Positions 24,401-50,989 of a DNA stretch of 64,000 nt are shown here, piece after piece. The number at the start of each line of letters is the position of its first letter. Position 1 is the stretch's first letter. The stretch comes from Macrostomum hystrix (taxonomy: Eukaryota > Animalia > Platyhelminthes). Position numbers and translations under genes: made by a program. The stretch is from positions 16,802,001 through 16,866,000 of the forward strand of contig CATNEN010000039.1 of the NCBI GenBank assembly GCA_950097015.1. The letters run 5' to 3'. The notes beneath the pieces are model-generated. The model saw only the letters and a program-made list of their open reading frames with translations. It did no database searches and was not told where the DNA came from.

Positions 24401-27400
24401 GCTTCTTCCTCTGATCCTATAGGGCCGCTCATTCCTCTGATCCTTCAGGGCCGCTTCTTCCTCTGATCCTATAGGGCCGCTCTTTCCTCTGATCCTATAG
24501 GGCCGCTCTTTCCTCTGATCCTATAGGGCCGCTCTTTCCTCTGATCCTTCAGGGCCGCTCATTTCTCTGATCCTTCAGGGCCAGGGCCGCTCATTCCTCT
24601 GATCCTTCAGGGCCACTCTTTTTATCAGAATCTTCAGGTCAGCTCTTTCCTCTGATCCTTCAGGGCCACTCTTTCATCAGAATCTTCAGGGCAGCTCATT
24701 CCTCTGATCCTTCAGGGCCGCTCATTCCTCTGATCCTTCAGGGCCACTCTTTCATCTGAACTTTCAGGGCAGCTCTTTCCTCTGATCCTTCAGGGCCGCT
24801 CATTCCTCTGATCCTTCAGGGCCCGTCTTTCCCCTGACCTCACTTTTTAAAATACTGAAGTGTTGCTTTTTTTCTCCAGTACACAATATTTATTTGAATG
24901 CCATTTAATTCCAGATACGACCTGGACGACGACTCTGACGATGAGGTCGCAGTTGACCACAGCGAAGTCCGCCGCGCACAGTCGGGTCCTGGCGCCCTCT
25001 CTGCAGATGTAGCAGTGTCCAGATCATTGCAATCTGTCGACTTAAACACACCGCAGTCTATTTCGCCTTCAACAATCGTATCACCAGCATCCGGCAGTTC
25101 AATGCTGCTTCAACTATTGCACCGTCTGGCACCAATCGATGCGACAGTCTGGCGCGAGAGCAGTCTAGCTATTCGCCTACTGGAACTATTCAAAGCTCCA
25201 TTCCTACTGCCGCTAACAATTGCCATTCCCATTGTTGACGATGAATTACCGATGCGCGGCTGGTGCAGATTATTGAACTGTCTGCAACTAATGATTGGAC
25301 CGATTGTATGCCTGCTAGCTAGCAATCAGTATAGTGTGGCTGTGCCATATGGCTCCAGTGTGTTGCTGCTGTATATATGCGCTCCCGTTCTGGCTTTTGT
25401 GGCTCTGTTGGCTTTGTACTTTACACGCAGCGACCGACCGCCTGTGTGGCACGACTTTCTAGCCTGGTTGGCATTCGTTACAGCGGTTTGTGTTATCTAT
25501 TTGATTGCTAATGAAGTGGTTGCTCTTCTGCAGGTGAGAATCTATTGTTTAATTATTTATTTGTTATTATTCAAGGTTAGTTATACCTGTACAGGCTTTA
25601 CCCTTAATTGATCATGCGCTACATCAGATTGGTCATACTAATTACAGATAGCTCATAGCAGGCATAAATTGGTCAAGCCTGAAACATACTCTAGATCGGT
25701 CATAACTACTCTAGATCGGTCATTACTACTCTATATCGGTCATAACTACTCTAGATCGGTCATAGCTACTCTATATCGGTCATAGCTACTATAGATCGGT
25801 CATAACTACTATAGATCGGTCATAGCTACTCTATATCGGTCATAGCTACTATAGATCGGTCATATCTACTATAGATCGGTCATAACTACTATAGATCGGT
25901 CATAGCTACTATAGATCGGTCATAACTACTATAGATCGGTCATAACTACTATAGATCGGTCATAACTACTATAGATCGGTCATAACTACTCTAGATCGGT
26001 CATAGCTACTCTATATCGGTCATAGCTACTATAGATCGGTCATAACTACTATAGATCGGTCATAACTACTATAGATCGGTCATAACTACTCTAGATCGGT
26101 CATAGCTACTCTATATCGGTCATAGCTACTATAGATCGGTCATAACTACTATAGATCGGTCATAACTACTATAGATCGGTCATAACTACTCTAGATCGGT
26201 CATAGCTACTCTATATCGGTCATAGCTACTATAGATCGGTCATAACTACTATAGATCGGTCATAACTACTTTAGATCGGTCATAACTACTTTAGATCGGT
26301 CATACCTACTCTAGATCGGTCATAGCTACTTTAGATCGGTCATAGCTACTCTAGATCGGTCATAACTACTCTAGATCGGTCATAACTACTCTAGATCGGT
26401 CATAATTACTCAAGATCAGTCATAACTACTTTAGATCGGTCATATCTACTATAGATCGGTCATAACTACTATAGATCGGTCATATCTACTATAGATCGGT
26501 CATAGCTACTTTAGATCGGTCATAACTACTTTAGATCGGTCATATCTACTATATATCGGTCATATCTACTATAGATCGGTCATACCTACTCTAGATCGGT
26601 CATAACTACTTTAGATCGGTCATAGCTACTATAGATCGGTCATATCTACTATTGATCGGTCACAACTACTTTAGATCGGTCATAGCTACTATAGATCGGT
26701 CATAGCTACTCTAGATTGGTCATAACTACTATAGATCGGTCATAGCTACTTTAGATCGGTCATAGCTACTTTAGATCGGTCATAACTACTTTAGATCGGT
26801 CATAGCTACTATAGATCGGTCATAGCTACTCTAGATTGGTCATAGCTACTCTAGATTGGTCATGGCTACTATAGATCGGTCATACATACTCTAGATCGGT
26901 CAAAACTACTCTAGATTGGTCATAACTACTATAGATTGGTCATAGCTACTTTAGGTCGGTCATACATACTCTAGATCGGTCAAAACTCACTCTATATCTG
27001 TCATAGCTATTCTATAATACTCATATCTACTCTAGATTTCTTATACCAATCATTTTTGTGATTCCCATTCCTAAGTCTGTCAAAATAATCCCAAAATTCC
27101 CCACCCATCCCAGGCCTTCGGTGTACTCTTAAACGTATCCAAAGCCATCCTGGGCCTCACCCTACTGGCCTGGGGCAACAGTATCGGCGATATGATTAGC
27201 AATGTAGCCTTAGCTCGCCGTGGCTACCCGCGCATGGCCATCTCAGCCTGTTTCGGAGGCCCAATGTTCAACCTCTTGTGCGGCGTGGGCCTGTCATTCA
27301 CTTGGCTCATTGTTAAACAAAACAGTCGTCCTATAAAACTGCTTGAAGGTCAGCACGATTATGTCCTATTGGGCAGTCTAGCAGTGAGCCTTTTATTCTC

Positions 27401-28320: not shown

Positions 28321-28803
28321 TGTGTTTGATAGTACAAGTAGTATTAGTTCAATGAAAGTAGAAATTTTTGGCATAAGTATTTTTTGCTTTCAATGGTAAG
28401 AAATAATTTTCTTCTAATATTAATTTTTGCGTTAAATAAATCTGGCTTAGGTCGATTCATCAATGTAGGAACTGAGAAATGCGACTGTTTGTAGTCGATA
28501 GCCGAAAAGTCACAAGAGCGATTTCAATGCGATTCAGTATATTTTATAACAGCCGAGTTGTGCTGGGGTGGCGGCTAAAGCCGCACCCCGTACATCAGTT
28601 AACGTGCGTGCCAAGGGGGGTAGAAAGGTGGCAGAGAGAAAGACGCAGAACGCCGCCAACCCCACGCACGCGTGACGGCTGGCGCCGCCTACACTTCTCC
28701 CCCCCAAAGGAATAAAACGAAATTGAAAAAACTAAACTTTGAACATGAGATTAACAGTTCAGATGATAGAAACTTAATGGATCTTTAGAGCGCAATTCCT
28801 TAG

Positions 28804-31800
28804 TTACTTGTACCGCTTAGGCTTGTCACGGGCAGCTCTAGGATGGCGTCTCAGTGCCACGGCATCATTTTCCTGACCAGTATCCTGGCCGACAGGCGGA
28901 GGCGGGCCGGCAGGCGAAGGCGGGCCGGCAGGCGGGCTGGCAGGCGGGCCGGCAGGCGGGCCGGCAGGCGGGCCGGCAGGCGGGCCGGCAGGCGGGCCGG
29001 CAGGCGGGCCGGCAGGCGGGCCGGCAGGCGGGCCGGCAGGCGGGCCGGCAGGCGGGCCGGCAGGCGGGCCGGCAGGCGGGCCGGCAGGCGGGCCGGCAGG
29101 CGGGCCGGCAGGCGGGCCGGCAGGCGGGCCGGCAGGCGGGCCGGCAGGTGGAAACATTGGTCGGAGCTGAGTCACGTGTCGCATGCAGGACTGTTGGCCT
29201 CGTCGTAGGATGCAGGTGTCGCCTCGAACCTCTTCTACCGTCCACGGCTGGGTCTCGAATGGCAGCTGAGTTTTGATGCGTGCCTGCTGCTTTCGGAGAA
29301 CCATTGTGCCGGGAACTACTCTGTGCTCCTTGGCGGTGTTGCGCTTGTCAAAGGCTCGCTTCATTTCGCGCGTGTACTGCCGACTCCAGTCCCTCACGGC
29401 TTGATGGTCGAATCCAGTCACAGTTGGCTGCCGACTAGCCGGGATTCCGTCGTTGATCGCCCTGCCCATGAGTAGCTCGGCCGGGGTGCGTCCTGTGGCT
29501 CTGTGTGGCGTGGTGCGGAATGCCAGTAGCCAGTCGTCTAGAGCCTCTCTCCAGTTCCGGCCCTCAGCAATCGCCGTCTTGATCACCTTGCCGATGCTGC
29601 GGTTGACACGTTCGGTGGCTCCGTTGGACTCCGGGTGCAGTGGACAGATAAGCCGGTGATGAACTCCATATTCGATGAGGAAGTTACGAAATTCAGCGGA
29701 GTTGAAGGGCGGTCCGTTGTCGGTAATGACCTCCGCGGGAATTCCGTGGCGACTGAAGAGCCGTCTCAGGTGCGGTGTCACGCTGCCGGCCGTGGTTGAA
29801 TGCATTACGTCGACTTCTGGGTACTTGGAGTACAAGTCGGTGGTGACGAGCAGCATGTGACCTTGCACCGGACCGTAGAAGTCCATGCCGAGCAGCTGCC
29901 AAGGCCCGTCGGGCATTTCCGTCGGCTTTAGAGGCGTCTGGTGCACGTGCGTTGCCGCTGCCTGACAGTAGATGCAGCACTTGACAAAGACTTCGCAGTC
30001 GCTGTACATTTTTGGCCACCAGACCTTGGTTTGCAGGCGCTTTAGAGTCCTGTCCGCCCCGAGGTGTCCGGTGTGAGCCAGCTGCAGGATCGGCCTCCGC
30101 AGTGCCTCGGGGATGACGATGAGATCTCCACGAAGCAGGACGCCGTCGTTTTCGGTTAGTTCGCTGCTGATGGACTTGAATGAGCGTTGCACCGGGCTGA
30201 GAGTGTTCCAGTTGCCGGTTCTGATCGCGCCGAGTGCGGCCTGCATTTCCGCATCAGTTCTTGCAGCCTCTCTGATCTGTCGGATTGTGAAGCCCTTTGG
30301 CACGGCACCAGTTGACACAGCGTTGACGTGGGCTTCATCGAGGACCTCGCCGATGTTTGGCCTCGACTCTGGCAGCGGCTGGCGGCTGAGCAGATCGGCT
30401 GGATTTGCTGGTCCCGGCCTGTACAACAGAGTAAAGCGGAGGTGCTGGATGCGGAGGGCCATTCGCTCGATCCGCGGCGGCGGGCGGGACCCCGGCTTGA
30501 ACAGTGGAACTAGGGGCCGGTGGTCCGTCACAACGGTGAAGTTCGGGTCGCCTGCCAGGTAATGTTCGAATTTCAGGCAGGCGAACTTGATGGCCAGCGC
30601 CTCCCGCTCGATCTGCGCATACCGCTGCTCCACCGGCGACAGAGCTCTGCTGGCATAGGCCACGGGACGGCTGCTGCCGTCTGGCTGCTTCTGGGTGAGA
30701 ATGGCGCCGAGTCCGATCGGAGATGCGTCCACCAGGAGCTCCGTGTGCCGCTTGCGATCGAAGAATGCTAGCGTGTCGGCGTTGGCAATTGCACTTTTGA
30801 TGCTGTTGAATGCCTTGGTGTGGCTGGCGGTCCAATCCCACGGCTGGCCCTTTTTAGTCAGTTGGCGCAGCGGGGCCGACACGTCAGCGTATCCAGAAAT
30901 AAACTTCGCCAGAAAGTTTGCTGTGCCAAGGAATGACCGTATTTCTGAGACATTGGCGGGCTGCCGGAAGTCCTGCATTGCTCGGATCTTCTCGGCAGCT
31001 GGTTGGATGCCCTTGGCTGACAGATGCATTCCGAGGAAGTCGACTGCTGGCTTGGCGAACTTGCACTTGTCTTTGTTCAACGTGATGCCAAACTCGCCGA
31101 GGCGTTGAAGACATACACTCAGTCTTTCATGATGTTGTTTGATATCTGCGGCGTACACGATGACATCGTCGTGGACCCACCTGACGCCGTCGATGCCGCT
31201 GAGGATGCCTAGCATAACCCGTTGAAGGATTTCTGAGGCGTTGGTAAATCCCATGCTCAGCCGCTTCAGTCGCATCAGTCCGAGCGGCGTGCTGAATGTG
31301 AACAGATGTCGGCTGTCTTCGTGCACGGGGATCTGATAGAAAGCTTTCCGGATGTCCAGCTCGCTGAAAAGCTTGGCTCCAGACATCTCCTCGGTGACTT
31401 CGTCCAGTGTCGGGATCTGCTGCTTTTCCGGAACAACGAAGGCGTTCAGGTCGCGAAGGTCTTGGCAGATCCTGACGCCGCCGTCCGCCTTGGGCACTAC
31501 GACCATGCGTGCCACCCAGGCGCTGGGTCCCTTGACTGCTTCGATGATGTCCTGTCGCTCCAATTCCTTCAGCTCGTCCATCACGGTTGCTCTTAGATGC
31601 GCCGCTACCCGGGAAGGCGCGTGGCAGACTGGAACGGCGTCGCCTGACAGCTGCACTTTCACCTGGACGCCCTTGATGCATCCGATGCCTTCGAAGACTT
31701 CTCTGTGACGGTGCAGGATGTCTTGCAGTTGCGGTGACAGGCTCGCTGTGCTGTTTGAGTGCACGGCTTCCGTCCCGCTCGAATCGGGGCGCTGGATTTT

Positions 31801-32988
31801 GAGCACTCCGAGTCTGAATGCGGGCTCGCGACCGAGAATCGTCAGGCCGTCACCATCCATGATGTAGAACGGAATGACAGTGCTGGCTGATCCAACGTGG
31901 ACTTGTAAGTCGGAGACACCAAGGATCTTCAGCGGTGAAGCGCAACCGTAGGCTCGCACCTCGGATTTTGGAGCTCGCAGATGCGGCCGGCTGAGCGTCT
32001 TGAAGGTGCATTTGCTCATAATGCTGCAGCTAGCTCCGCTGTCAATCATCATCGAGAGCTGCTGATCTCCCACTTGGACTTTCAGCGAGACGTCGGGCGG
32101 ATAGATGCCTTCCCTGTGTAGTGTGAACACGTCTTGGCTGGAGGTGTCTCCAGGAGCTGTACTGTATGCGTTGGCGTGAATCTGCTGTTGGACTCTGTTG
32201 CTGCTTAACCGCGGCTGGCGGCAGGCCTTTGCTAGGTGGTTTGGCTTGCCACAGTTGTGGCAGATTTTGTCCTTGGCTGCGTCACAGGAAGCGTGGCCGC
32301 GCTCGCCGCAGCGGTAGCAGGTCTGTGACTGGCTCTGCCTGGCCTCGCTGTGTGGTCTGCGTTTGTCTGACGCTGTTTGGCTTCTATTGGCCACGCTGGC
32401 CACCTGCGACTCGGTGGTCTTCTCCATCTCAGCAGCCTGTTCTTCCGCAGCTTCGAATGCTCTGGCCTTCCGCAGCGCGTCTTCCAGTGAGATGTTTGCT
32501 TCCTGGAGCAGCCGTCTGCGCAGCTTGTCGGAGGTGCATGTAGCAACAAGTTGGTCTCGGATGAGGGAGTCGCGTAAGTCGCCGAATTCACATGGTTCAG
32601 CAGCCGTCCGCAGTCTGCTGTACCAAGCTTCGATTTTCTCACCAGATTGTTGAACACACAGACGGAACTGGTATCGAGCGTAAACGATGTTCTTTCTATC
32701 GTCGAAGTGTTGCTTCAGCCCCTTGAGGATTGTCTGCAGTGTGTGCTCCTGCTCCTGGCCGTCGGCGTCAGACCTGGGCTTTGGTAGTTCCCGAATGATG
32801 TCCGAGACTTCCTTTCCGGCCGTGTAGCAGAGCAGCTTGCATTTTTGGTTTTCATTGGCAATTCCGGATGCCTCAATAAAGTCTGCGAATCGCGCTGACC
32901 ATTCGTTCCAACGTTTGCCTGCGTTGTGCGGGTCGTGAGTAATGAGAAATGGCTCGGGTGGAGGTAGAGAAACGTAGCTTGTGGCCAT
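28804..32988 (-). CDS. Single-ORF Gag-Pol polyprotein (~1394 aa from MATSY)
   Basis: Two Zn knuckles (CYRCGERGHASC, CHNCGKPNHLAKAC), protease IDSGA, RT WVHDDVIV, RNase H VDASPIGLGA, integrase HHCC plus D-D-E. PR-RT-RH-IN order; no stops. Confidence 0.95.
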   Translation of the reverse strand: MATSYVSLPPPEPFLITHDPHNAGKRWNEWSARFADFIEASGIANENQKCKLLCYTAGKEVSDIIRELPKPRSDADGQEQEHTLQTILKGLKQHFDDRKNIVYARYQFRLCVQQSGEKIEAWYSRLRTAAEPCEFGDLRDSLIRDQLVATCTSDKLRRRLLQEANISLEDALRKARAFEAAEEQAAEMEKTTESQVASVANRSQTASDKRRPHSEARQSQSQTCYRCGERGHASCDAAKDKICHNCGKPNHLAKACRQPRLSSNRVQQQIHANAYSTAPGDTSSQDVFTLHREGIYPPDVSLKVQVGDQQLSMMIDSGASCSIMSKCTFKTLSRPHLRAPKSEVRAYGCASPLKILGVSDLQVHVGSASTVIPFYIMDGDGLTILGREPAFRLGVLKIQRPDSSGTEAVHSNSTASLSPQLQDILHRHREVFEGIGCIKGVQVKVQLSGDAVPVCHAPSRVAAHLRATVMDELKELERQDIIEAVKGPSAWVARMVVVPKADGGVRICQDLRDLNAFVVPEKQQIPTLDEVTEEMSGAKLFSELDIRKAFYQIPVHEDSRHLFTFSTPLGLMRLKRLSMGFTNASEILQRVMLGILSGIDGVRWVHDDVIVYAADIKQHHERLSVCLQRLGEFGITLNKDKCKFAKPAVDFLGMHLSAKGIQPAAEKIRAMQDFRQPANVSEIRSFLGTANFLAKFISGYADVSAPLRQLTKKGQPWDWTASHTKAFNSIKSAIANADTLAFFDRKRHTELLVDASPIGLGAILTQKQPDGSSRPVAYASRALSPVEQRYAQIEREALAIKFACLKFEHYLAGDPNFTVVTDHRPLVPLFKPGSRPPPRIERMALRIQHLRFTLLYRPGPANPADLLSRQPLPESRPNIGEVLDEAHVNAVSTGAVPKGFTIRQIREAARTDAEMQAALGAIRTGNWNTLSPVQRSFKSISSELTENDGVLLRGDLIVIPEALRRPILQLAHTGHLGADRTLKRLQTKVWWPKMYSDCEVFVKCCIYCQAAATHVHQTPLKPTEMPDGPWQLLGMDFYGPVQGHMLLVTTDLYSKYPEVDVMHSTTAGSVTPHLRRLFSRHGIPAEVITDNGPPFNSAEFRNFLIEYGVHHRLICPLHPESNGATERVNRSIGKVIKTAIAEGRNWREALDDWLLAFRTTPHRATGRTPAELLMGRAINDGIPASRQPTVTGFDHQAVRDWSRQYTREMKRAFDKRNTAKEHRVVPGTMVLRKQQARIKTQLPFETQPWTVEEVRGDTCILRRGQQSCMRHVTQLRPMFPPAGPPAGPPAGPPAGPPAGPPAGPPAGPPAGPPAGPPAGPPAGPPAGPPAGPPAGPPAGPPAGPPAGPPASPPAGPPSPAGPPPPVGQDTGQENDAVALRRHPRAARDKPKRYK
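28900..29148 (-). repeat. In-frame 12-bp repeat encoding roughly 20 PPAG units at the Pol C-terminus
   Basis: ggcaggcgggcc tandem copies. Confidence 0.95.
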
Positions 32989-33196
32989 GCCCCGCGTTGG
33001 CTGCGATGGCTTGCGATGCCACTGTAGGAACTGAGAAATGCGACTGTTTGTAGTCGATAGCCGAAAAGTCACAAGAGCGATTTCAATGCGATTCAGTATA
33101 TTTTACTAGCAAGTTTTGCCCCCCTTCGGGGAGCAGAAATACTTTTAATTCGTCTAGTATATACTTTTTAGCAGCTGAATTTACAGCTTTTTAAAG

Positions 33197-34240
33197 CTAC
33201 AATGAACCCCCAGTTGACAATGATCCCCCAGTTAATGATGATCCCCTAGTTGACGATGATCCCCCAGTTGACAATGATCCCCCAGTTGACAATGATCCCC
33301 CAGTTGACAATGAACCCCCAGTTGACAATGAACCCCCAGTTGACAATGATCCCCCAGTTGACAATGATCCCCCAGTTGAAAATGATCCCACAGTTGACAA
33401 TGATCCCCCAGTTGACAAAGATCCCCCAGTTCACAATGAACCCCCAGTTCACAATGTACCCCCAGTTGACAATGAACCCCCAGTTGACAATGAACCCCAG
33501 TTGACAATGATCCCCCAGTTGACAATGATCCCCCAGTTGACAATGATCCCACAGTTGACAATGATCCCCCAGTTGACAAAAATCCCCCAGTTCACAATGA
33601 ACCCCCAGTTGACAATGATCCCCCAGTTGACAATGATCCCCCAGTTGACAATGATCCCCCAGTTGACAATGATCCCCCAGTTGACAATGAACCCCCAGTT
33701 GACAACGATCCCCCAGTTGACAATGATCCCCCAGTTGACAATGATCCCACAGTTGACAAAGATCCCCCAGTTCACAATGATCCCCCAGTTGATGATGATC
33801 CCCCAGTTGATGATGATCCCCAGTTGATGATGATCACCCAGTTGACAATGATCCCCCAGTTGACAATGATCCCCCAGTTGACAATGATCCCCCAGTTGAC
33901 AATGAACCCCCAGTTGACAACGATCCCCCAGTTGACAATGATCCCCCAGTTGACAATGATCCCACAGTTGACAAAGATCCCCCAGTTCACAATGATCCCC
34001 CAGTTGATGATGATCCCCCAGTTGATGATGATCCCCAGTTGATGATGATCACCCAGTTGACAATGATCCCCAAGTTGACCATGATCCCCCATTTGATGAT
34101 GATTCCCCAGTTGACAATTATCCCCCAGTTGACAATGATCCCCCAGTTGACAATTATCCCCCCAGTTTACCAAGATCCTCCAGTTGATGATTATCCCCCA
34201 GTTTACCTTGATCCCCATTTTGAGGATGACTCCACAGTTG
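33197..34240. repeat. Minisatellite, 18-bp unit cagttgacaatgatcccc (Helitron cargo)
   Basis: Tandem copies, degenerate at the right edge. Confidence 0.95.
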
Positions 34241-34289
34241 ACGTTGTTTTTCAAACACTGGGTTAGCCAAGATTCAAACTCAGGTTTCG

Positions 34290-37200
34290 CCATGTTTTAA
34301 ACCCTGCTGGGCTATGATTCAAACTCTCGTTTTACCATGATTCAGACTCTGGTTGACTATGATTCAAACCGTGGTTTGGCCATGATTCAAACTCTGGTTT
34401 AGCCATGATTCAAACGCTGTTTTTGCAATGATTCAAACTCTGGTTTAGCCATGATTCAGACTCTAGTTTAGCCATGATTCAAACTCTGGTTTAGCCATGA
34501 TTCAAACTCTGGTTAGCTATGATTCAAACTCTGGATTCACCTTGATTTAAATTTAGCCATGATTCAAACGTTGGTTTAGCCATGATTCAAACCTTGGTTT
34601 AGCCATGATTCAAACTCTGGTTTAGCCATGATTTTAACTTTAGTTTAGCCATGATTCAGACGCTGTGATGATTCAAAGTCTGCTTTAGCCATGATTCAAA
34701 CTCTGTTTTAGCCATGATTTAAACTCTGGTGTAGCCATGATTCAGACGCTGGTTTAGCCATGATTTAAACTCTGGTGTAGCCATGATTCAGACGCTGGTT
34801 TAGCCATGATTCAAACTCTGGTTAGCTATGATTCAAACTCTGGTTTCGCCTTGATTCAAACTCTGGTTTTGCCATGATTCAAACTCTGGTTTAGCCATGA
34901 TTCAAACTCTGGTTTAGCCATGATTCAAACTCTGGTTAGCTATGATTTAAACTCTGGATTCGCCTTGATTTAAATTTAGCCATGATTCAGACTCTGGGTT
35001 AGCCATGATTCAAACGTTGGTTTAGCCATGATTCAAACCTTGGTTTAGCAATGATTTTGAATCATCCTTCAAACTCTGGGTTAGCCATGATTCAAACGCT
35101 GGTTTAGCCATGATTCCAACTCTGGTTTAGCCATGATTTAAGCTCTGGTTTAGCCATGATTCAAGCTCTGGTTTAGCCATGATTCTAACGCTGGTTTAGC
35201 CATGATTCTAACGCTGGTTTAGCCATGATTCAAACTCTGGTTTAGCCATGATTTAAGCTCTGGTTTAGCCATGATTCAAGCTCTGGTTTAGCCATGATTC
35301 AAACTCTGGTTTAGCCATGATTCAAACTCTGGTTTAGCCATGATTCTAACGCTGGTTTAGCCATGATTGAAACTCTGGTTAGCCATGATTCAAACTCTGG
35401 TTTAGCCATGATTCAGACTCCGGTTGACTATGATTTAGACTCCGGTTGACTATGATTCAAACTCTGGTTTAGCCATGATTCAAGCTCTGGTTTAGCCATG
35501 ATTCAAACTCTGGTTTAGCCATGATTTAAACTCTGGTTTAGCCATGATTCATACTCTGGTTTAGCCATGATTTAAGCTCTGGTTTAGCCATGATTCAAGC
35601 TCTGGTTTAGCCATGATTCAAGCTCTGGTTTAGCCATGATTCAAACTCTAGTTTAGCCATGATTCAAACTCTGGTTTAGCCATGATTCAAACTCTGGTTT
35701 AGCCATGATTCAAACTCTGGTTTAGCCATGATTCTAACGCTGGTTTAGCCATGATTCTAACGCTGGTTTAGCCATGATTCAAACTCTGGTTTAGCCATGA
35801 TTCAAGCTCTGGTTTAGCCATGATTCAAGCTCTGGTTTAGCCATGATTCAAACTCTGGTTTAGCCATGATTCAAACTCTGGTTAGCTATGATTCAAACTC
35901 TGGTTTAGCAATGATTCAAACTCTGGTTTAGCCATGATTCAGATTCTGGTTTAACCATGATTCAAACTCTGGTTTGCCATGATTCAAGCTCTGGTTTAGC
36001 CATGATTCAAACTCTAGTTTAGCCATGATTTAAACTCTGGTTTAGCCATGATTCAAACGCTGGTTTTGCCATGATTCAAACTCTGGTTTTGCCATGATTC
36101 AAACTCTGGTTTAGCCATGATTCAAACTCTGGTTTAGCCATGATCCAAACTCTGGTTTAGCCATGATTCAGACTGTGGTTTAGCCATGATTCAAACTCTG
36201 GTTTAGCCATGATTCAAACTCTGGTTTAGCCATGATTCAAACTCTGGTTTAGCCATGATTCAAACTCTGGTTTAGCCACGATTCAAACTCTGGTTTAGCC
36301 ATGATTCAAACTCTTGTTTAGCCATGATTCAAACTCTGCATTAGCCATGATTCAAACTCTGGTTTAGCCATGATTCAAACTCCGGTTTAGCCATGATTCA
36401 AGCTCTGGTTTAGCTTGAACTCTGGCTGGCTATGATTCAAGCCATAGTTTAGCCATGATTCAAACTCTGGTTTAGCCATGATTCAAACTCCGGTTTAGCC
36501 ATGATTCAAGCTCTGGTTTAGCTTGAACTCTGGCTGGCTATGATTCAAGCCATAGTTTAGCCATGATTCAAACGCTGGTTTAGCCATGATTCAAACTCTT
36601 GTTTAGCCATGATTCAAACTCTGCATTAGCCATGATTCAAACTCTGGTTTTGCCATGATTCAAACTCTGGTTTAGCCATGATTCAAACTCTGGTTTAGCC
36701 ATGATCCAAACTCTGGTTTAGCCATGATTCAGACTGTGGTTTAGCCATGATTCAAACTCTGGTTTAGCCATGATTCAAACTCTGGTTTAGCCATGATCCA
36801 AACTCTGGTTTAGCCATGATTCAGACTGTGGTTTAGCCATGATTCAAACTCTGGTTTAGCCATGATTCAAACTCTGGTTTAGCCATGATCCAAACTCTGG
36901 TTTAGCCATGATTCAGACTGTGGTTTAGCCATGATTCAAACTCTGGTTTAGCCATGATTCAAACTCTGGTTTAGCCATGATTCAAACTCTGGTTTAGCCA
37001 TGATTCAAACTCTGGTTTAGCCATGATTCAAACTCTGATTTAGCCATGATTCAAACTCTGGTTTAGCCACGATTCAAACTCTGGTTTAGCCATGATTCAA
37101 ACTCTTGTTTAGCCATGATTCAAACTCTGCATTAGCCATGATTCAAACTCTGGTTTAGCCATGATTCAAACTCCGGTTTAGCCATGATTCAAGCTCTGGT

Positions 37201-37580
37201 TTAGCTTGAACTCTGGCTGGCTATGATTCAAGCCATAGTTTAGCCATGATTCAAACTCTGGTTTAGCCATGATTCAAACTCCGGTTTAGCCATGATTCAA
37301 GCTCTGGTTTAGCTTGAACTCTGGCTGGCTATGATTCAAGCCATAGTTTAGCCATGATTCAAACGCTGGTTTAGCCATGATTCAAACTCTTGTTTAGCCA
37401 TGATTCAAACTCTGCATTAGCCATGATTCAAACTCTGGTTTAGCCATGATTCAAGCTCTGGTTTAGCCATGATTCAAACGCTGGGTTAGCCATGATTCAA
37501 ACTCTGGTTTAGCCATGATTCAAACTCTGGTTTAGCCATGATTCAAACTCTGCTTTTGCCATGATTTAAACTCTGGTTTG
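34290..37580. repeat. Minisatellite, 23-bp unit gccatgattcaaactctggttta (Helitron cargo)
   Basis: Tandem copies with many variants and block duplications. Confidence 0.95.
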
Positions 37581-38689
37581 CTTTGAAAGATGATATTTTA
37601 TTTACGAAATGAAAAAAATAAATTTAAATAATCTTCAGTCACTACTGGCTGAAAATTAGTCTAAATTATTTGACGCAGTGCAGAATCGAACCCTAGCCTA
37701 GCCTAAACTATTCCTAGTGCCTACACATCGGCTATCGGCTATTCCGACTGTTGGTTAGTGGGTGCAAAAATCAGCCTTATAAAATGAATTCTTAAAGTTC
37801 TGGCTTTGTACAATGAAGTAAGAAAATAGAGTACACTCAGTCTCGCGGTTTGTTGTGTACATTTATTTCCAATTTGTCTCCAGAGTGCAGGCTTTTAACT
37901 CAGTCAGCTAGTGGGTGTTGTGCAAGTTGATGATGCAATTCTAACTCAGTGGCAGTCAGTGAATGAAATTCTCAATAGGCCAAGATAGTTTGACCTTTGA
38001 AATGGTCAAAAAACATGTTTTTCGAATATTTAATCCCCTTAGCAATAAAGTTAAGCTTAATAAAAATACGTGTATAATTGTCCCCATATTTAGCATCTTT
38101 TGGTGAAGAAATAGTGAAAATCGGTTGAGCCGTTCGGGAGAAAATCAATTACAACCAACCAAGCAAGCATTTCATTTTTAGTATAGTAGATATAACAGCC
38201 GAGTTGTGCTGGGGTGGCGGCTAAAGCCGCACCCCGTACATCAGTTAACGTGCGTGCCAAGGGGGGTAGAAAGGTGGCAGAGAGAAAGACGCAGAACGCC
38301 GCCAACCCCACGCACGCGTGACGGCTGGCGCCGCCTACAATCAATAATCCTGATTAAAGTGCATGTTGTCCTTGCTGAAATGAGTTTCTTAATTTCAGTC
38401 TTGGTAATATGCTGAAGATATTTTTTAGTAACTATGTACTAATAGAATTGATTTCAGAACGTTATCCGAGTATAGTGCTATAAACTACAGATTCGGATAT
38501 TTCATGCCATTGCAATTCATATGTATCTGTCTTTCTTATTTAAATTTTTACATTAAATAAATTTCGCTTCGTGTTGAAACTTTATATTTTCAGAACACTT
38601 TTTCAAATCTCATCCGCTATCTCTTGTCTTAATTCCTTGTCGAAAAGTGATTCGATTATTAGAAATAGTGAGACTGAGTGATAGTGGAG

Positions 38690-39550
38690 GGTGAGGGCGA
38701 AATTCAGTGTTGGGCTAGGGCGAAACGGGCTGTTAAGTGAGGGCGACACAGAGTGTTAGGCGAGGGCGAAACAGAGTGTTGTGTGAGGGCGAAATACGAG
38801 CGTAGAGCGTTGGCGAGGGCGAAACACGGTGGAGGGCGAAGGCAAAACTCCAGTGTAGGGCGAGGGCGAAACACAGTGGATGGCGATGGCGAAAAACAGT
38901 GGATGGCGAGGGCGAAACACAGTGGAGGGCGAGGGCGAAAAACAGTGGATGGCGAGGGCGAAACACAGTGGAGGGCGAGGGCGAAAAACATTGGATGGCG
39001 AGGGCGAAACATAGTGGCGGGCGAGGGCGAAATTGAGTGTTGGGCAAGGGCGAAATTGAGTGTTGGGCAAGGGCGAAATTGAGTGTTGGGCAAGGGCGAA
39101 ATTGAGTGTTGGGCAAGGGCGAAATTGAGTGTTGGGCAAGGGCGAAACAGAGTGTTTGACGAGGGCGAAACAGAGTGTTAGACGAGGGCGAAACAGAGTG
39201 TTTGCGAACCACAGTGAAGGGCGAGGGCGAAACATAGTGGCGGGCGAGGGCGAAATTGAGTGTTGGGCAAGGGCGAAATTGAGTGTTGGGCAAGGGCGAA
39301 ATTGAGTGTTGGGCAAGGGCGAAACAGAGTGTTTGACGAGGGCGAAACAGAGTGTTAGACGAGGGCGAAACAGAGTGTTTGCGAACCACAGTGAAGGGCG
39401 AGGGCGAAACATAGTGGCGGGCGAGGGCGAAACACAGTAGAGGGCGAGGGCGAAACACAGTGAAGGGCGAGGGCGAAACACAGTGGAGGGCGAGGGCGAA
39501 ACACAGTGGAGGGCGAGGGCGAAACACAGTGGAGGGCGTGGGCGAAACAA
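38690..39550. repeat. Minisatellite, 23-bp unit with constant agggcgaaa core
   Basis: Tandem copies with a variable middle segment. Confidence 0.9.
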
Positions 39551-41537: not shown

Positions 41538-43545
41538 CTTGAGAATTGGGTAGCTATGAGATTGAGAATCGGGTAGCTATGAGATTGAGAATTGGGTAGC
41601 TATGAGATTGAGAATCGGGTAGCTATGAGATTGAGAATTGGGTAGCTATGAGATTGAGAATCGGGTAGCTATGAGATTGAGAATTGGGTAGCTATGAGAT
41701 TGAGAATTGGGTAGCTATGAGATTGAGAATTGGGTAGCTATGAGATTGAGAATTGGGTAGCTATGAGATTGAGAATCGGGTAGCTATGAGATTGGGAATT
41801 GGGTAACTATGAGATGGAGAATCGGGTAGCTATGAGATTGGGAATTGGGTAACTATGAGATTGAGAATTGGGTAGCTATGAGATTGAGAATCGGTAGCTA
41901 TGAGATTGAGAATCGGGTAGCTATGAGATTGGGAATTGGGTAGCTATGAGATTGGGAATTGGGTACCTATGAGATGGAGAATCGGGTAGCTATGAGATTG
42001 AGAATTGGGTAGCTATGAGATTGGGAATTGGGTAGCTATGAGATGGAGAATCGGGTAGCTATGAGATTGAGAATTGGGTAGCTATGAGATTGGGAATTGG
42101 GTAACTATGAGATGGAGAATCGGGTAGCTATGAGATTGAGAATTGGGTAGCTATGAGATTGAGAATTGGGTAACTATGAGATGGAGAATCGGGTAGCTAT
42201 GAGATTGAGAATCGGGTAGCTATGAGATTGGGAATTGGGTAACTATGAGATGGAGAATCGGGTAGCTATGAGATTGAGAATTGGGTAGCTATGAGATTGG
42301 GAATTGGGTAACTATGAGATGGAGAATCGGGTAGCTATGAGATTGAGAATTGGGTAGCTATGAGATTGAGAATTGGGTAGCTATGAGATTGAGAATTGGG
42401 TAGCTATGAGATTGAGAATTGGGTAGCTATGAGATTGGGAATTGGGTAACTATGAGATGGAGAATCGGGTAGCTATGAGATTGAGAATTGGGTAGCTATG
42501 AGATTGAGAATCGGGTAACTATGAGATTGAGAATTGGGTAGCTATGAGATTGAGAATCGGGTAACTATGAGATTGAGAATTGGGTAGCTATGAGATTGAG
42601 AATCGGGTAGCTATGAGATTGAGAATTGGGTAGCTATGAGATTGAGAATCGGGTAGCTATGAGATTGGGAATTGGGTAACTATGAGATGGAGAATCGTGT
42701 AGCTATGAGATTGGGAATTGGGTAACTATGAGATTGAGAATTGGGTAGCTATGAGATTGAGAATCGGTAGCTATGAGATTGAGAATCGGGTAGCTATGAG
42801 ATTGGGAATTGGGTAGCTATGAGATTGGGAATTGGGTACCTATGAGATGGAGAATCGGGTAGCTATGAGATTGAGAATTGGGTAGCTATGAGATTGGGAA
42901 TTGGGTAACTATGAGATGGAGAATCGGGTAGCTATGAGATTGAGAATTGGGTAGCTATGAGATTGAGAATTGGGTAACTATGAGATGGAGAATCGGGTAG
43001 CTATGAGATTGAGAATCGGGTAGCTATGAGATTGGGAATTGGGTAACTATGAGATGGAGAATCGGGTAGCTATGAGATTGAGAATTGGGTAGCTATGAGA
43101 TTGGGAATTGGGTAACTATGAGATGGAGAATCGGGTAGCTATGAGATTGAGAATTGGGTAGCTATGAGATTGAGAATTGGGTAGCTATGAGATTGAGAAT
43201 TGGGTAGCTATGAGATTGAGAATTGGGTAGCTATGAGATTGGGAATTGGGTAACTATGAGATGGAGAATCGGGTAGCTATGAGATTGAGAATTGGGTAGC
43301 TATGAGATTGAGAATCGGGTAACTATGAGATTGAGAATTGGGTAGCTATGAGATTGAGAATCGGGTAACTATGAGATTGAGAATTGGGTAGCTATGAGAT
43401 TGAGAATCGGGTAGCTATGAGATTGAGAATTGGGTAGCTATGAGATTGAGAATCGGGTAACTATGAGATTGAGAATCGGGTAGCTATGAGATTGAGAATT
43501 GGGTAGCTATGAGATTCAGAATTGGGTAGCTATGAGATTGGCAAT
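41538..43545. repeat. Minisatellite, 23-bp unit gagaattgggtagctatgagatt, starting at the ATG10 stop
   Basis: Direct tandem copies. Confidence 0.95.
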
Positions 43546-43877
43546 CGGGATGGTGTGAGATTGAGCATAGGGTAGAATGAGATGTTGAAAGAGCTTTACG
43601 AATATTTGTGCTTTAAATATTTATATCCTAAATGCCTGTCTTTCGAGTATTCCAAGTTAGCTTTAGAATATATTATAAAATTCTCGCATCATGCTACTAA
43701 ATATACTACTAATTGTCAGCTTGTAAATAAAACGTGCACTAAATTTGAGTTTTTGCTGTACACCGGGACATGTATCTGGTATGTATCTGGTTTGCTATAT
43801 CTGGACACCGGTAGTTGTAAAAAGAATTTTTTTCATATTTTATAATTTAGTTTTTTTCGTAGTAGTTTTTGTTTGCA

Positions 43878-46726: not shown

Positions 46727-47214
46727 TTAAGCAAGCAATCTAAAGTCCTATAATGTGTTTCACAAGCATTTACGTGTGCCTTAATAGTGCAAAACGGCAC
46801 GACAAGACTATTAGCAAGTACATTTCAGGGCTAGTAAAAATTCTGCCTAAATTGTGTTTTGCATAAGCGAGTAATAAATTAATAAAATTATTTCTGTCTG
46901 TTATATGCTGTTATTTTGTCCTGTACAATATACACAGATTTTGTCGTTTCGCTTGTCTAATTATTTCCAATTATTAATATTAACATATTAATTATTAATT
47001 ATTTATCGTATTCGTAATTTTTTACACATAAACATATGGTTTAGTTTGGTGCATTAAATTTGATAACACATGTTCTCTATGAGAGAATGAAAGCAAATAA
47101 ATTACACGACATACTGTGGTACAGTTCTCAAAATACTATAGTTCAAAATTTATATTTTAGCAAATGTCTAGAACTGAGAATTTCAATTCATATCTAATAA
47201 AGAGGTTTTATCAC

Positions 47215-50200
47215 TTTGCAATCAGCTATGAGATTTTGAGACTTTGCTGTCAGTTATGAGACTTTGAGACTTTGCTGTCAGCAATGAGACTTTGAGACTT
47301 TGTTGTCAGCTATGAGACTTTGAGACTTTGCTGTCAGCAATGAGACTTTGAGACTTTGCTGTCAGCAATGAGATTTTGAGACTTTGCTGTCAGTTATGAG
47401 ACTTTGAGACTTTGCTGTCAGCAATGAGACTTTGAGACTTTGTTGTCAGCTATGAGACTTTGAGACTTTGCTGTCAGCTATGAGACTTTGAGACTTTGCT
47501 GTCAGTTATGAGACTTTGAGACTTTGCTGTCAGCTATGAGACTTTGAGACTTTGCTGTCAGTTATGAGATTTTGAGACTTTGCTGTCAGCAATGAGACTT
47601 TGAGACTTTGCTGTCAGCTATGAGACTTTGAGACTTTGCTGTCAGCAATGAGACTTTGAGACTTTGCTGTCAGCAATGAGACTTTGAGACTTTGCTGTCA
47701 GCTATGAGACTTTGAGACTTTGCTGTCAGCAATGAGACTTTGAGACTTTGCTGTCAGCAATGAGACTTTGAGACTTTGCTGTCAGCTATGAGACTTTGAG
47801 ACTTTGCTGTCAGCAATGAGACTTTGAGACTTTGAGACTTTGCTGTCAGCAATGAGACTTTGAGACTTTGCTGTCAGTTATGAGACTTTGAGACTTTGCT
47901 GTCAGCTATGAGACTTTGAGACTTTGCTGTCAGTTATGAGACTTTGAGACTTTGCTGTCAGCTATGAGACTTTGAGACTTTGCTGTCAGTTATGAGACTT
48001 TGAGACTTTGCTGTCAGCTATGAGACTTTGAGACTTTGCTGTCAGCAATGAGACTTTGAGACTTTGCTGTCAGCTATGAGACTTTGAGACTTTGCTGTCA
48101 GCAATGAGACTTTGAGACTTTGAGACTTTGCTGTCAGCAATGAGACTTTGAGACTTTGCTGTCAGTTATGAGACTTTGAGACTTTGCTGTCAGCTATGAG
48201 ACTTTGAGACTTTGCTGTCAGTTATGAGACTTTGAGACTTTGCTGTCAGCTATGAGACTTTGAGACTTTGCTGTCAGTTATGAGACTTTGAGACTTTGCT
48301 GTCAGCTATGAGACTTTGAGACTTTGCTGTCAGTTATGAGACTTTGAGACTTTGCTGTCAGCTATGAGACTTTGAGACTTTGCTGTCAGTTATGAGACTT
48401 TGAGACTTTGCTGTCAGCTATGAGACTTTGAGACTTTGCTGTCAGTTATGAGACTTTGAGACTTTGCTGTCAGCTATGCGACTTTGAGACTTTGCTGTCA
48501 GCTATGAGACTTTGAGACTTTGAGACTTTGCTGTCAGTTATGAGACTTTGAGACTTTGCTGTCAGTTATGAGATTTTGAGACTTTGCTGTCAGTTATGAG
48601 ATTTTGAGACTTTGCTGTCAGCAATGAGACTTTGAGACTTTGCTGTCAGCTATGAGACTTTGAGACTTTGCTGTCAGCAATGAGACTTTGAGACTTTGCT
48701 GTCAGCTATGAGACTTTGAGACTTTGCTGTCAGCAATGAGACTTTGAGACTTTGCTGTCAGCAATGAGACTTTGAGACTTTGCTGTCAGCTATGAGACTT
48801 TGAGACTTTGCTGTCAGCAATGAGACTTTGAGACTTTGAGACTTTGCTGTCAGCAATGAGACTTTGAGACTTTGCTGTCAGTTATGAGACTTTGAGACTT
48901 TGCTGTCAGCTATGAGACTTTGAGACTTTGCTGTCAGTTATGAGACTTTGAGACTTTGCTGTCAGCTATGAGACTTTGAGACTTTGCTGTCAGTTATGAG
49001 ACTTTGAGACTTTGCTGTCAGCTATGAGACTTTGAGACTTTGCTGTCAGCAATGAGACTTTGAGACTTTGCTGTCAGCTATGAGACTTTGAGACTTTGCT
49101 GTCAGCAATGAGACTTTGAGACTTTGAGACTTTGCTGTCAGCAATGAGACTTTGAGACTTTGCTGTCAGCTATGAGACTTTGAGACTTTGCTGTCAGTTA
49201 TGAGACTTTGAGACTTTGCTGTCAGCTATGAGACTTTGAGACTTTGCTGTCAGTTATGAGACTTTGAGACTTTGCTGTCAGCTATGAGACTTTGAGACTT
49301 TGCTGTCAGTTATGAGACTTTGAGACTTTGCTGTCAGCTATGAGACTTTGAGACTTTGCTGTCAGTTATGAGACTTTGAGACTTTGCTGTCAGCTATGAG
49401 ACTTTGAGACTTTGCTGTCAGCAATGAGACTTTGAGACTTTGCTGTCAGCTATGAGACTTTGAGACTTTGCTGTCAGCAATGAGACTTTGAGACTTTGAG
49501 ACTTTGCTGTCAGCAATGAGACTTTGAGACTTTGCTGTCAGCTATGAGACTTTGAGACTTTGCTGTCAGTTATGAGACTTTGAGACTTTACTGTCAGCAA
49601 TGAGACTTTGAGACTTTGCTGTCAGTTATGAGACTTTGAGACTTTGCTGTCAGCTATGAGACTTTGAGACTTTGCTGTCAGTTATGAGACTTTGAGACTT
49701 TGCTGTCAGCTATGAGACTTTGAGACTTTGCTGTCAGTTATGAGACTTTGAGACTTTGCTGTCAGTTATGAGACTTTGAGACTTTGCTGTCAGTTATGAG
49801 ATTTTGAGACTTTGCTGTCAGTTATGAGATTTTGAGACTTTGCTGTCAGCAATGAGACTTTGAGACTTTGCTGTCAGCTATGAGACTTTGAGACTTTGCT
49901 GTCAGCAATGAGGCTTTGAGACTTTGCTGTCAGCTATGAGACTTTGAGACTTTGCTGTCAGCAATGAGACTTTGAGACTTTGCTGTCAGCAATGAGACTT
50001 TGAGACTTTGCTGTCAGCTATGAGACTTTGAGACTTTGCTGTCAGTTATGAGACTTTGAGACTTTGAGACTTTGCTGTCAGCAATGAGACTTTGAGACTT
50101 TGCTGTCAGCAATGAGACTTTGAGACTTTGCTGTCAGCTATGAGACTTTGAGACTTTGCTGTCAGTTATGAGACTTTGAGACTTTGTTGTCAGCAATGAG

Positions 50201-50570
50201 ACTTTGAGACTTTGCTGTCAGCAATGAGACTTTGAGACTTTGCTGTCAGCAATGAGACTTTGAGACTTTGCTGTCAGCAATGAGATTTTGAGACTTTGCT
50301 GTCAGCTATGAGATTTTGAGACTTTGCTGTCAGCAATGAGATTTTGAGACTTTGCTGTCAGTTATGAGACTTTGAGACTTTGCTGTCAGCAATGAGACTT
50401 TGAGACTTTGTTGTCAGCTATGAGACTTTGAGACTTTGCTGTCAGCTATGAGACTTTGAGACTTTGCTGTCAGTTATGAGACTTTGAGACTTTGCTGTCA
50501 GCTATGAGACTTCGAGACTTTACTGTCAGCAATGAGACTTTGAGACTTTGCTGTCAGCTATGTGATTTTG
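47215..50570. repeat. Minisatellite, 28-bp unit gagactttgagactttgctgtcag(cta/tta/caa)t
   Basis: Tandem copies built on an internal 8-bp subrepeat. Confidence 0.96.
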
Positions 50571-50989
50571 AGAATTCACAATCAGGTATGAGATTTTGAG
50601 ACCAATTGTTAGCTCTGAGATTTTGAAAGTACATAGTCAGTGAAGGGAATTTTTGGTATCTTTGGTCAGACCTAGAGTTGCCTTTTAGATAGAGGCTGTG
50701 CTCATTATCTCATATTCAGAGCTTTTAGCTAACCATTGTTTAAAACCGCCCTGTTTTAAAAAACTTTTTTTAAAGTTTTCTAGAAATAAAATGCTAAAAT
50801 TCCTGTTCGATCTAATTGTTCTCTGTTTTCCACCGGTGTTTTAACTTTTTAGCTAGTTCAGATACTTTCTAGAAACATGTCACTTTTTTCAAATTCAGAT
50901 ATAACTTATAATCATGATAACTTTTGTCGGTTAAAGCTACAGAATCACAGCTGGAATCGTAGCAAAAAAATCTCAGCTACTCGTAGAAT

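Follow-up and report, generated by a model that had tools for sequence, protein, structure and literature searches.

A Ty3/gypsy-like retrotransposon with an interrupted 5' LTR

The window, a 64,000-nucleotide stretch of a Macrostomum hystrix contig, contains a Ty3/gypsy-like LTR retrotransposon (28464..38339) that is the host of a second element inserted in its 5' LTR. Apart from the target-site duplications (TSDs), all features located below lie on the minus strand. The host measures 4789 bp without the insert and displays the Ty3/gypsy characters, namely, direct LTRs, TG...CA ends, a short TSD, and the order protease-RT-RNase H-integrase, which here follows a zinc knuckle in a single open frame. 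This gag-pol frame runs uninterrupted over 28804..33072, with its first ATG at codon 29 (~32988), and includes in frame a 12-bp array, (PPAG)x19, at 28918-29148. A polypurine tract (28694..28705; minus-strand GGGGGGGAGAAG) adjoins the intact 3' LTR of 230 bp (28464..28693), which we used as the empty-site reference.

The 5' LTR is present in two pieces, the distal 83 bp (LTR positions 148-230) at 33023..33105 and the proximal 147 bp (LTR positions 1-147) at 38193..38339, and the split point falls within the sole TATA-like word of the LTR, TATAAAATA. According to the first-pass annotation of this DNA, excising 33106-38192 restores a 230-bp 5' LTR equal to the 3' LTR, and the ATCAA TSD is intact. 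Indeed, the rejoined pieces gave 230 bp identical to 28464-28693 at 230/230 positions, and ATCAA was found on both the left (28459..28463) and the right (38340..38344). The absence of differences over 230 bp corresponds to a divergence below ~1.3% (95% confidence); in BLAST, the match between the LTRs stretched to 233 bp with 1 mismatch, located outside the TG...CA boundary.

Genome-wide, the LTR word of the empty insertion site occurred 17 times without TA and 0 times with TA, and both LTR-Helitron junction words had a single occurrence each. Since the insert is confined to one of the two host LTRs, its junction words are unique, and 17 empty LTR words exist elsewhere, the insertion took place later than the integration of the host.

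The insert has the ends of a canonical Helitron

Canonical Helitrons are defined by a 5' TC, a 3' CTRR, and a palindrome of 16 to 20 nt located ~11 nt from the 3' end, and they insert between A and T with no target-site duplication (PMC4067079). We delimited a non-autonomous element of this class, TC...CTAG, of 5085 bp at 33106..38190. Read on the minus strand, it begins with TC (38190-38189), ends with CTAG (33109-33106), and carries 11 nt from its 3' end a 19-nt subterminal hairpin (33117..33135) with a 3-nt loop and an 8-bp stem that includes one G-T pair. The bases next to it are A (5') and T (3'), the locus reading ...TTATA|TC...CTAG|TAAAA. Of 60 family 5' ends sampled, most likewise started with TC, head-to-tail joints read CTAG|TC, and the 3' flank began with T in 19/20 solo copies; the last base of the 5' flank was A in ~10/15 solo copies and mostly T in the remainder. 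The Helentron trait of TT insertion with boundary T runs was not seen, the ends being TC/CTAG and the window target A|T. Furthermore, comparison of the first 60 with the last 130 nt revealed no subterminal inverted repeat of at least 7 nt, those of Helentron-associated elements (HINE/DINE-1-like) measuring 12 to 15 bp. The family does display a trait of Helentron-associated elements, central tandem repeats between conserved ends.

The Helitron ends had been described in the first-pass annotation as (TA)TC, a subterminal hairpin, CTAG, and an A|T target on the minus strand, and all of this stands except for the TA, which is not part of the Helitron. This dinucleotide (38191..38192) separates the LTR from the TC of the Helitron and belongs to neither the family terminus nor the LTR; we count it as extra because the CTAG|TC joints and the solo copies give TC as the family terminus. 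The filled site is thus longer by 2 bases, TA, than the site in the sister LTR and in 17 other LTR copies; these bases could represent a 2-bp duplication, bases brought from the flank of the source, or repair filler. These two bases run counter to the rule of no target duplication and precise A|T insertion of canonical Helitrons.

Two diverged minisatellites make up most of the insert

From 5' to 3', the insert comprises a unique 5' region of ~610 bp (37580..38190), a 23-bp minisatellite of ~145 units (34250..37579; minus-strand unit TCATGGCTAAACCAGAGTTTGAA), a short spacer separating the arrays (34217..34249), an 18-bp minisatellite of ~56 units (33199..34216; minus-strand unit CAACTGGGGGATCATTGT), and a 3' terminal region of 93 bp (33106..33198) that at least 40 other copies share with 100% identity. 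TRF returned 85 to 88% matches for the 23-bp array, with a decrease to 79% over the inner edge (34250-35056), and 56.7 copies with 89% matches for the 18-bp array. Summed, the two arrays account for 4.35 of the 5.09 kb, in agreement with the earlier description of ~4.3 of 5.1 kb as 18-bp and 23-bp arrays with diverged units and degenerate edges. The entire 5' region is common with coding-type relatives, and its nt 3-183 are 77 to 92% shared with 331-bp mini-Helitrons. One word of the 5' region resembles a tRNA, yet it is not a tRNA gene, and none was found.

The block duplications that had also been reported were recovered as exact repeats, with run lengths of 403, 238, and 235 bp at offsets of 791, 92, and 215, respectively. 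In the 23-bp array, an exact duplication private to the window copy covers 36248..37441, with 37441-37039 repeated at 36650-36248, and an additional (4-unit)x2 block occupies 36981-36652; in the 18-bp array, the private exact duplication covers 33622..34071 (the 235-bp run). About 1 kb of exact duplication was missing from every sampled relative; the 23-bp array contributes 92 plus ~700 bp of it and the 18-bp array 216 bp. This private ~1 kb may have arisen in place, after the insertion; the blocks might otherwise originate in the source lineage or during copying.

The arrays are shared by the whole family and were largely inherited by the window copy

An initial genome search with the family termini yielded 679 5'-end and 610 3'-end candidates, and the exact 28-nt 3' terminus was present 326 times in the genome. 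The 23-bp array followed the 600-bp head at 29/29 other 5' loci, and the 18-bp array preceded the 93-bp tail at 30/30 3' loci. Wherever both array edges were visible in the sampled loci, the order was 23-bp then 18-bp, in old and young subfamilies alike. Every sampled copy had the same layout of a ~600-bp head, the 23-bp array, a short spacer, the 18-bp array, and the 93-bp tail. The search for loci with the same termini and both arrays in the same order, proposed in the first-pass annotation, was thus positive for every sampled copy, and copies without the arrays, which it had regarded as a sign of in-place expansion, were absent from this sample.

A simple global alignment yielded identities of 92 to 97% for the arrays, which looked uninformative, and the comparison was resolved by bar-coding of the units and block-gap alignment. 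The order of unit variants was common to the window copy and to copies on contigs C3, C7, C2, C38, and C33 (at least 6 other loci). The C3 copy, reconstructed over its full length from loci L003 and L055, which overlap, agreed with the window copy, including the arrays, at 3437/3447 bases (99.7%), and the only length differences were block indels of unit multiples. For the remaining copies, the comparison covered the head or the tail; the window copy was 99.48% identical to the C38 head and 99.71% identical to the C33 head, and relative to both it contained extra blocks of 92 bp and ~700 bp, C33 additionally lacking two smaller blocks of 131 and 23 bp. The total array length ranged from ~1.7 to 5.1 kb among copies, the window copy being the longest measured. 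As the C3 copy matches at 99.7% with only whole-unit block differences, the unit-to-unit substitutions were inherited, and these comparisons show that ~3.3 kb of arrays, including the old substitutions between units, came from the source copy.

The arrays also occur in two coding-type relatives, L020 and L025, which share the 600-bp 5' region and contain the arrays in their 5' leader (7 units in L020, 35 plus ~13 units in L025), followed by a common leader and then an open frame. In both, PF14214 (Rep domain) matches lie 2.3 to 2.4 kb downstream of the start of the open frame. On contig C1, an exact 3' terminus was found 14.2 kb from the start of the element, which gives a candidate coding element at C1:10163711-10177944; the other candidate runs on C7 from 6741448. 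We presume that L020 and L025 are Rep/helicase-coding partners sharing the family ends, the Rep matches being tied to them by coordinates.

Origin of the insert and of its arrays

We consider it very probable that 33106-38190 is a recent insertion of an array-carrying, non-coding Helitron that inherited the bulk of its arrays, and we hold with the same high confidence that the insert belongs to a canonical, non-coding Helitron family of high copy number. The wide variation in array length among copies, together with the record length and the ~1 kb of exact private duplications of the window copy, would also suit an array-poor Helitron in which the 18-bp and 23-bp arrays grew in place within the LTR. 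However, the arrays match those of a copy on another contig at 99.7%, variant units included, and independent growth cannot recreate the order of diverged units that is shared with at least 6 other loci. This scenario, to which we give almost no credence, is refuted for most of the array length and can be invoked for at most the private ~1 kb. The earlier claim that the arrays predate the insertion consequently holds for ~3.3 kb, given the C3 match and the shared unit order, whereas ~1 kb may have formed in place. The same annotation had viewed the arrays as cargo acquired by capture of flanking DNA. Helitrons can acquire pieces of host DNA, tandem repeats included (review PMC12628747), and the window abounds in unrelated minisatellites, from which the window element might have captured neighbouring arrays in a one-off event and then carried them here. 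Yet both arrays, with the same order and junctions, are found in every sampled family member, of old and young subfamilies, as well as in the 5' leader of the two coding-type relatives L020 and L025, which makes a one-off capture very unlikely. Since the arrays are family-wide, a capture, if any, would have to be an ancient event of the entire family and not a feature of the window copy, so this part of the claim had to be given up.

The structure of the locus and the array lengths come from the genome assembly, which the read runs neither supported nor contradicted. Among the contigs listed for four read runs (short contigs; region 37590-38690 compared), none bridged 38192/38193, and the contigs of an independent study showed only the uninterrupted LTR form at this position, as would be the case if a Helitron copy had been falsely joined into the LTR during assembly. 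The latter result is expected given the 17 other LTR copies, and one 196-bp contig from the independent study spanned the LTR/flank junction 38339/38340. An assembly artefact appears most improbable, as the junctions are base-exact, removal of the insert restores the LTR, and neither junction word occurs anywhere else in the genome. Furthermore, the break lies where Helitrons typically insert (A|T, a T after CTAG, and a 5'-end-like flank), which a false join would not yield.

In the mechanism that we propose for the insertion of the array-carrying Helitron, Rep/helicase from coding relatives with the same ends would copy the element from TC to CTAG as a single strand, the arrays travelling as part of the element. 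The Helitron landed after the integration of the host, whose LTRs are still identical, at the A|T step in the TATA-like word of the LTR, directly before a sequence that resembles the Helitron 5' end.

Relation to known repeat-carrying elements

Non-autonomous Helentrons with central satellite-like repeats, Cg_HINE, have been described in the Pacific oyster, where they are spread genome-wide and have been proposed as propagators of tandem repeats (PMC7492417). The window family differs from these Helentrons in its canonical TC/CTAG and A|T ends, its lack of subterminal inverted repeats, and its invariable possession of two arrays; in addition, the inheritance of the arrays is shown here unit by unit. 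DINE-1/HINE elements of Drosophila and other arthropods (PMC4067079) and DINE-TR1 (Dias et al. 2015, as cited in PMC12628747) are high-copy and non-autonomous. They resemble the present family as partners of coding rolling-circle elements with central micro- or minisatellites that can amount to about half of the element. The DINE-1/HINE features of subTIRs, TT insertion, and boundary T runs were not seen in the window family. Repeat-carrying rolling-circle elements being already published (oyster Cg_HINE, DINE-1), the locus is a clean example and not a new mechanism, and it leaves existing knowledge of Helitrons unchanged.

The first-pass annotation had proposed a rolling-circle route for the dispersal of minisatellites in this genome. 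A strict hairpin scan missed the known Helitron end; with a relaxed scan, Helitron-type ends were found only at the insert and at the mini-elements, and no hairpin with a CTAG|T end was detected beside the ~20 other arrays of the window. Thus, we do not claim that those other arrays are Helitron-borne, and the proposal is borne out only for the Helitron family of the window. At 326 or more copies, each a few kilobases long, this family would place on the order of a megabase of the two minisatellites. The locus provides a rare clean control for the published idea of tandem-repeat spread by rolling-circle elements: from the sister LTR we know precisely what the empty site was and how old the insertion can be at most, and sister Helitron copies separate, base by base, the inherited ~3.3 kb from the new ~1 kb of the 4.3-kb minisatellite load. 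The age of a minisatellite, in terms of unit divergence, and the age of its locus are uncoupled in this genome.

A possible preference for targets that resemble the Helitron 5' end

The target sequence just 3' of the insertion (33082..33105) matches the 5' end of the Helitron itself at 10/16 positions, in register. In the 3' flanks of 19 solo copies, the match to the family 5' end averaged 8.8/16, compared to 7.4 in composition-preserving shuffles, 0/5000 of which reached the observed value. Moreover, 13 of the 30 sampled 3' ends were joined CTAG|TC to a family 5' end, and one more adjoined the start of a related mini-Helitron. We tentatively suggest, at somewhat less than even odds, that the transposase picks targets that mimic its own 5' end, joining the 3' CTAG where a 5' end "would start". 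If true, target mimicry would account for the many CTAG|TC trains of the genome. The window insertion is a solo copy whose empty site is known, and on this reading, which as a whole we likewise hold only tentatively, the LTR site would be a clean case of mimicry outside any Helitron. The gain of the 2 nt TA, the counterpart of the TC of the element, could be a scar of such a target-mimic reaction.

Tandem arrays of truncated Helitrons, head-to-tail and with several 5' ends, have been reported in plant genomes (Xiong, Dooner & Du 2016, in the account given in PMC12628747) and are comparable to the CTAG|TC joints observed here. In that account, the model for the plant arrays is rolling-circle amplification, whereas the flanks analyzed here point to a preference for 5'-end-like targets. 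The 331-bp mini-elements also form trains.

A canonical Helitron in the 5' LTR of a young retrotransposon

Read on the minus strand, the insert at window 33106-38192 starts with TA-TC and finishes with a hairpin, seven bases and CTAG, the subterminal hairpin measuring 19 nt and ending 11 nt from the 3' end; the non-coding Helitron itself, from TC to CTAG, takes up 5085 bp (33106-38190). In 60 fetched genome loci, family copies ran from TC to CTAG, the base preceding TC was mostly A, and a T followed CTAG in 19 of 20 solo copies. We sought a subterminal inverted repeat in the Helitron and found none. The ends of the family match the features of the canonical Helitron definition quoted in PMC4067079; the family has these defining features and not those of Helentrons or DINE-1. 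The first-pass annotation had already described Helitron ends on the minus strand, which we confirmed, and all of its coordinates were correct.

The insert lies in a Ty3/gypsy-like retrotransposon (window 28464-38339). When 33106-38192 was excised as that annotation had proposed, 33023-33105 and 38193-38339 joined into a 230-bp LTR equal to the 3' LTR (28464-28693) at all 230 positions, and ATCAA was present at both outer ends of the element. The alignment of the LTR pair that had been called for thus revealed no appreciable divergence; by BLAST the match extended to 233 bp with 1 mismatch, located outside the TG...CA boundary. The retrotransposon has minus-strand orientation, which makes the LTR split by the Helitron its 5' LTR. 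A polypurine tract is directly beside the 3' LTR, and a word beginning TGG comes after the 5' LTR. The interior is a single unbroken frame of ∼1,400 codons encoding a zinc knuckle, aspartic protease, reverse transcriptase, RNase H and integrase, in the order of Ty3/gypsy. An in-frame 12-bp array (window 28918-29148) codes for (PPAG)x19 close to the C-terminal end of the polyprotein and may underlie the LTR-to-LTR spacing, which varies from 4.2 to 4.7 kb among copies of this retrotransposon family.

Timing and target site of the insertion

Only one LTR carries the insert, neither junction word recurs elsewhere in the genome, and 17 occurrences of the LTR word without interruption were counted, showing that the Helitron arrived later than the integration of the retrotransposon. 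With 0 differences in 230 bp, LTR divergence is below ∼1.3% (95% Poisson bound), consistent with the 0.3% divergence between the window Helitron and the copy on contig C3. Among the sequencing-run contigs listed, none bridged the Helitron/LTR junction. The precision of the junctions to the base speaks against a false join; the lengths of the arrays depend on the assembly.

The insertion broke the sole TATA-like word (TATAAAATA; window 38188-38200, LTR positions 146-154) of an otherwise GC-rich LTR, whose upstream 147 bp are now separated by 5.1 kb from the remainder of the element. Because the break is inside this word, the promoter of this retrotransposon copy was probably split. The filled site has an extra TA (window 38191-38192) that is in neither the sister LTR nor the 17 other LTR copies; this is odd for a Helitron, canonical Helitrons making no target duplication (definition quoted in PMC4067079). 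The target just 3' of the insertion (33082-33105, minus strand) matched the Helitron 5' end in register at 10/16 positions. The 3' flanks of 19 solo copies (including L023 and loci in the L033-L060 range) matched the family 5' end at a mean of 8.8/16 positions, well above the 7.4 ± 0.27 of composition-preserving shuffles, 8.8 being reached in 0/5000.

Most of the array sequence is older than the insertion

TRF resolved two arrays in the Helitron, one of 18-bp units at 33199-34216 (56.7 copies, 89% matches), the other of 23-bp units at 34250-37579 (∼145 copies, 85-88% matches, 79% at the inner edge). Mean edits from consensus per unit are 1.15 and 1.73. A genome search recovered sampled copies having the same termini and both arrays in the same order. 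The 23-bp array began ∼600 bp from TC in 29/29 other loci with the 5' head, the 18-bp array was immediately 5' of the 93-bp tail in 30/30 tail loci, and the 23-bp array came before the 18-bp array at each locus showing the inner edge of the latter.

We then bar-coded the units, assigning one letter to each variant, and compared letter strings between loci. The 18-bp string of the window copy equaled those on contigs C7, C3 and C2, apart from the doubling of one block and the absence of three units, and its 23-bp string kept the order found on C38, C33, C3, C7 and C2. A whole C3 copy of 3501 bp, reassembled from loci L003 and L055, was aligned to the window copy: 3437 of 3447 bases were identical, and the remaining differences were block indels of 18, 23, 54, 138, 216, 223, 430 and 590 bp. 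Across 2.1 kb, the heads on C38 and C33 showed 99.48% and 99.71% identity to the window copy. Relative to both, the window copy has extra blocks of 92 bp and ∼700 bp, and C33 additionally lacks blocks of 131 bp and 23 bp. Since array substitutions are common to copies at unlinked loci, they are older than the window insertion. The proposal that the arrays predate the insertion and came with the Helitron therefore stands, with stronger backing than divergence by itself had given it.

The block duplications noted earlier in the window copy were borne out as exact runs of 403 bp (offset 791) and 238 bp (offset 92) in the 23-bp array and 235 bp (offset 215) in the 18-bp array. None of the three was present in the sampled relatives. 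Being exact, they are young; they may date from the source copy, from the copying step or from growth at the present site. Together they contribute ∼1 kb to the window copy, the longest measured; other family copies span ∼1.7 to 4.4 kb by coordinates.

Coding-type relatives and known systems

Loci L020 (C1) and L025 (C7) begin with the same 600-bp head. In L020 (1503-3608), the head is followed by 7 units of the 23-bp array, and in L025 (1501-3607) by 35 such units, a spacer and ∼13 units of the 18-bp array. After the arrays, both share a unique leader, which in L020 leads into an open frame; the L025 sequence stops short of the frame. Rep-domain (PF14214) matches lie 2.3-2.4 kb past the frame start, whose position was taken directly from L020 and by projection in L025; on C1, 14.2 kb separate the start from an exact 3' terminus. 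Based partly on coordinates, both arrays seem to reside in the 5' leader of coding-type relatives, so the short family looks like a deletion derivative retaining head, arrays and tail. The arrays traveled with the Helitron, but not through a private capture by the window copy, as coding-type relatives seem to carry them too. The open frame of L020 also contains a 69-bp coding repeat.

Minisatellite spread by rolling-circle elements is already published. Oyster Cg_HINE (PMC7492417) and DINE-1/HINE (PMC4067079) combine conserved ends with tandem arrays in the center, in some cases two in succession, and have been described as vehicles for satellite-like repeats, which a recent review calls "a common example" (PMC12628747). 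The window Helitron shares this array-bearing plan and, unlike those Helentron-type cases, is canonical. The locus adds a further example: a canonical element with a known empty site and an age bound, in which inherited and new array sequence can be told apart unit by unit.

Rolling-circle dispersal, suggested by the first-pass annotation for minisatellites of this genome, was supported for the 18/23-bp family. The window also holds ∼20 unrelated minisatellites with units of 13-37 bp (4189-64000; e.g., 22568-24837, 41539-43583 and 47213-50602), and no hairpin with a CTAG|T end was found within 300 bp of them. The route is accordingly shown for the 18/23-bp Helitron family only.

Family size and tandem trains

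In a first look at the 220-Mb genome, the 613-bp head gave 679 candidates and the 93-bp tail 610; the last 28 nt of the Helitron occur exactly 326 times. Of 30 sampled 3' ends, 13 were joined directly (CTAG|TC) to a family 5' end, and 1 further end abutted the start of a related mini-Helitron. This 331-bp mini-Helitron has nt 3-183 of the head in common with the family and forms trains, one of which occupies window 1-1323 (minus strand, CTAG|TC joints); its units have a hairpin different from that of the studied family. Past this train, ∼8 kb beyond the window start, there is a Rep-domain match (C39:16793760-16794296).

Adjacent copies at L043-L045 (C5:5156556-5163491), L048, L049, L051 and L052 (C5 and C3) had identical unit bar-codes and were spaced by 3.4 or 5.4 kb. 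These copies resemble local or segmental duplications of entire Helitron units rather than separate transpositions. Short TCT or TCTTCT stacks were seen immediately 5' of some 5' ends (L008, L011, L012, L028, L029 and L030), as in the junction ...CTAGTCTTCT|TCTTATATAC.
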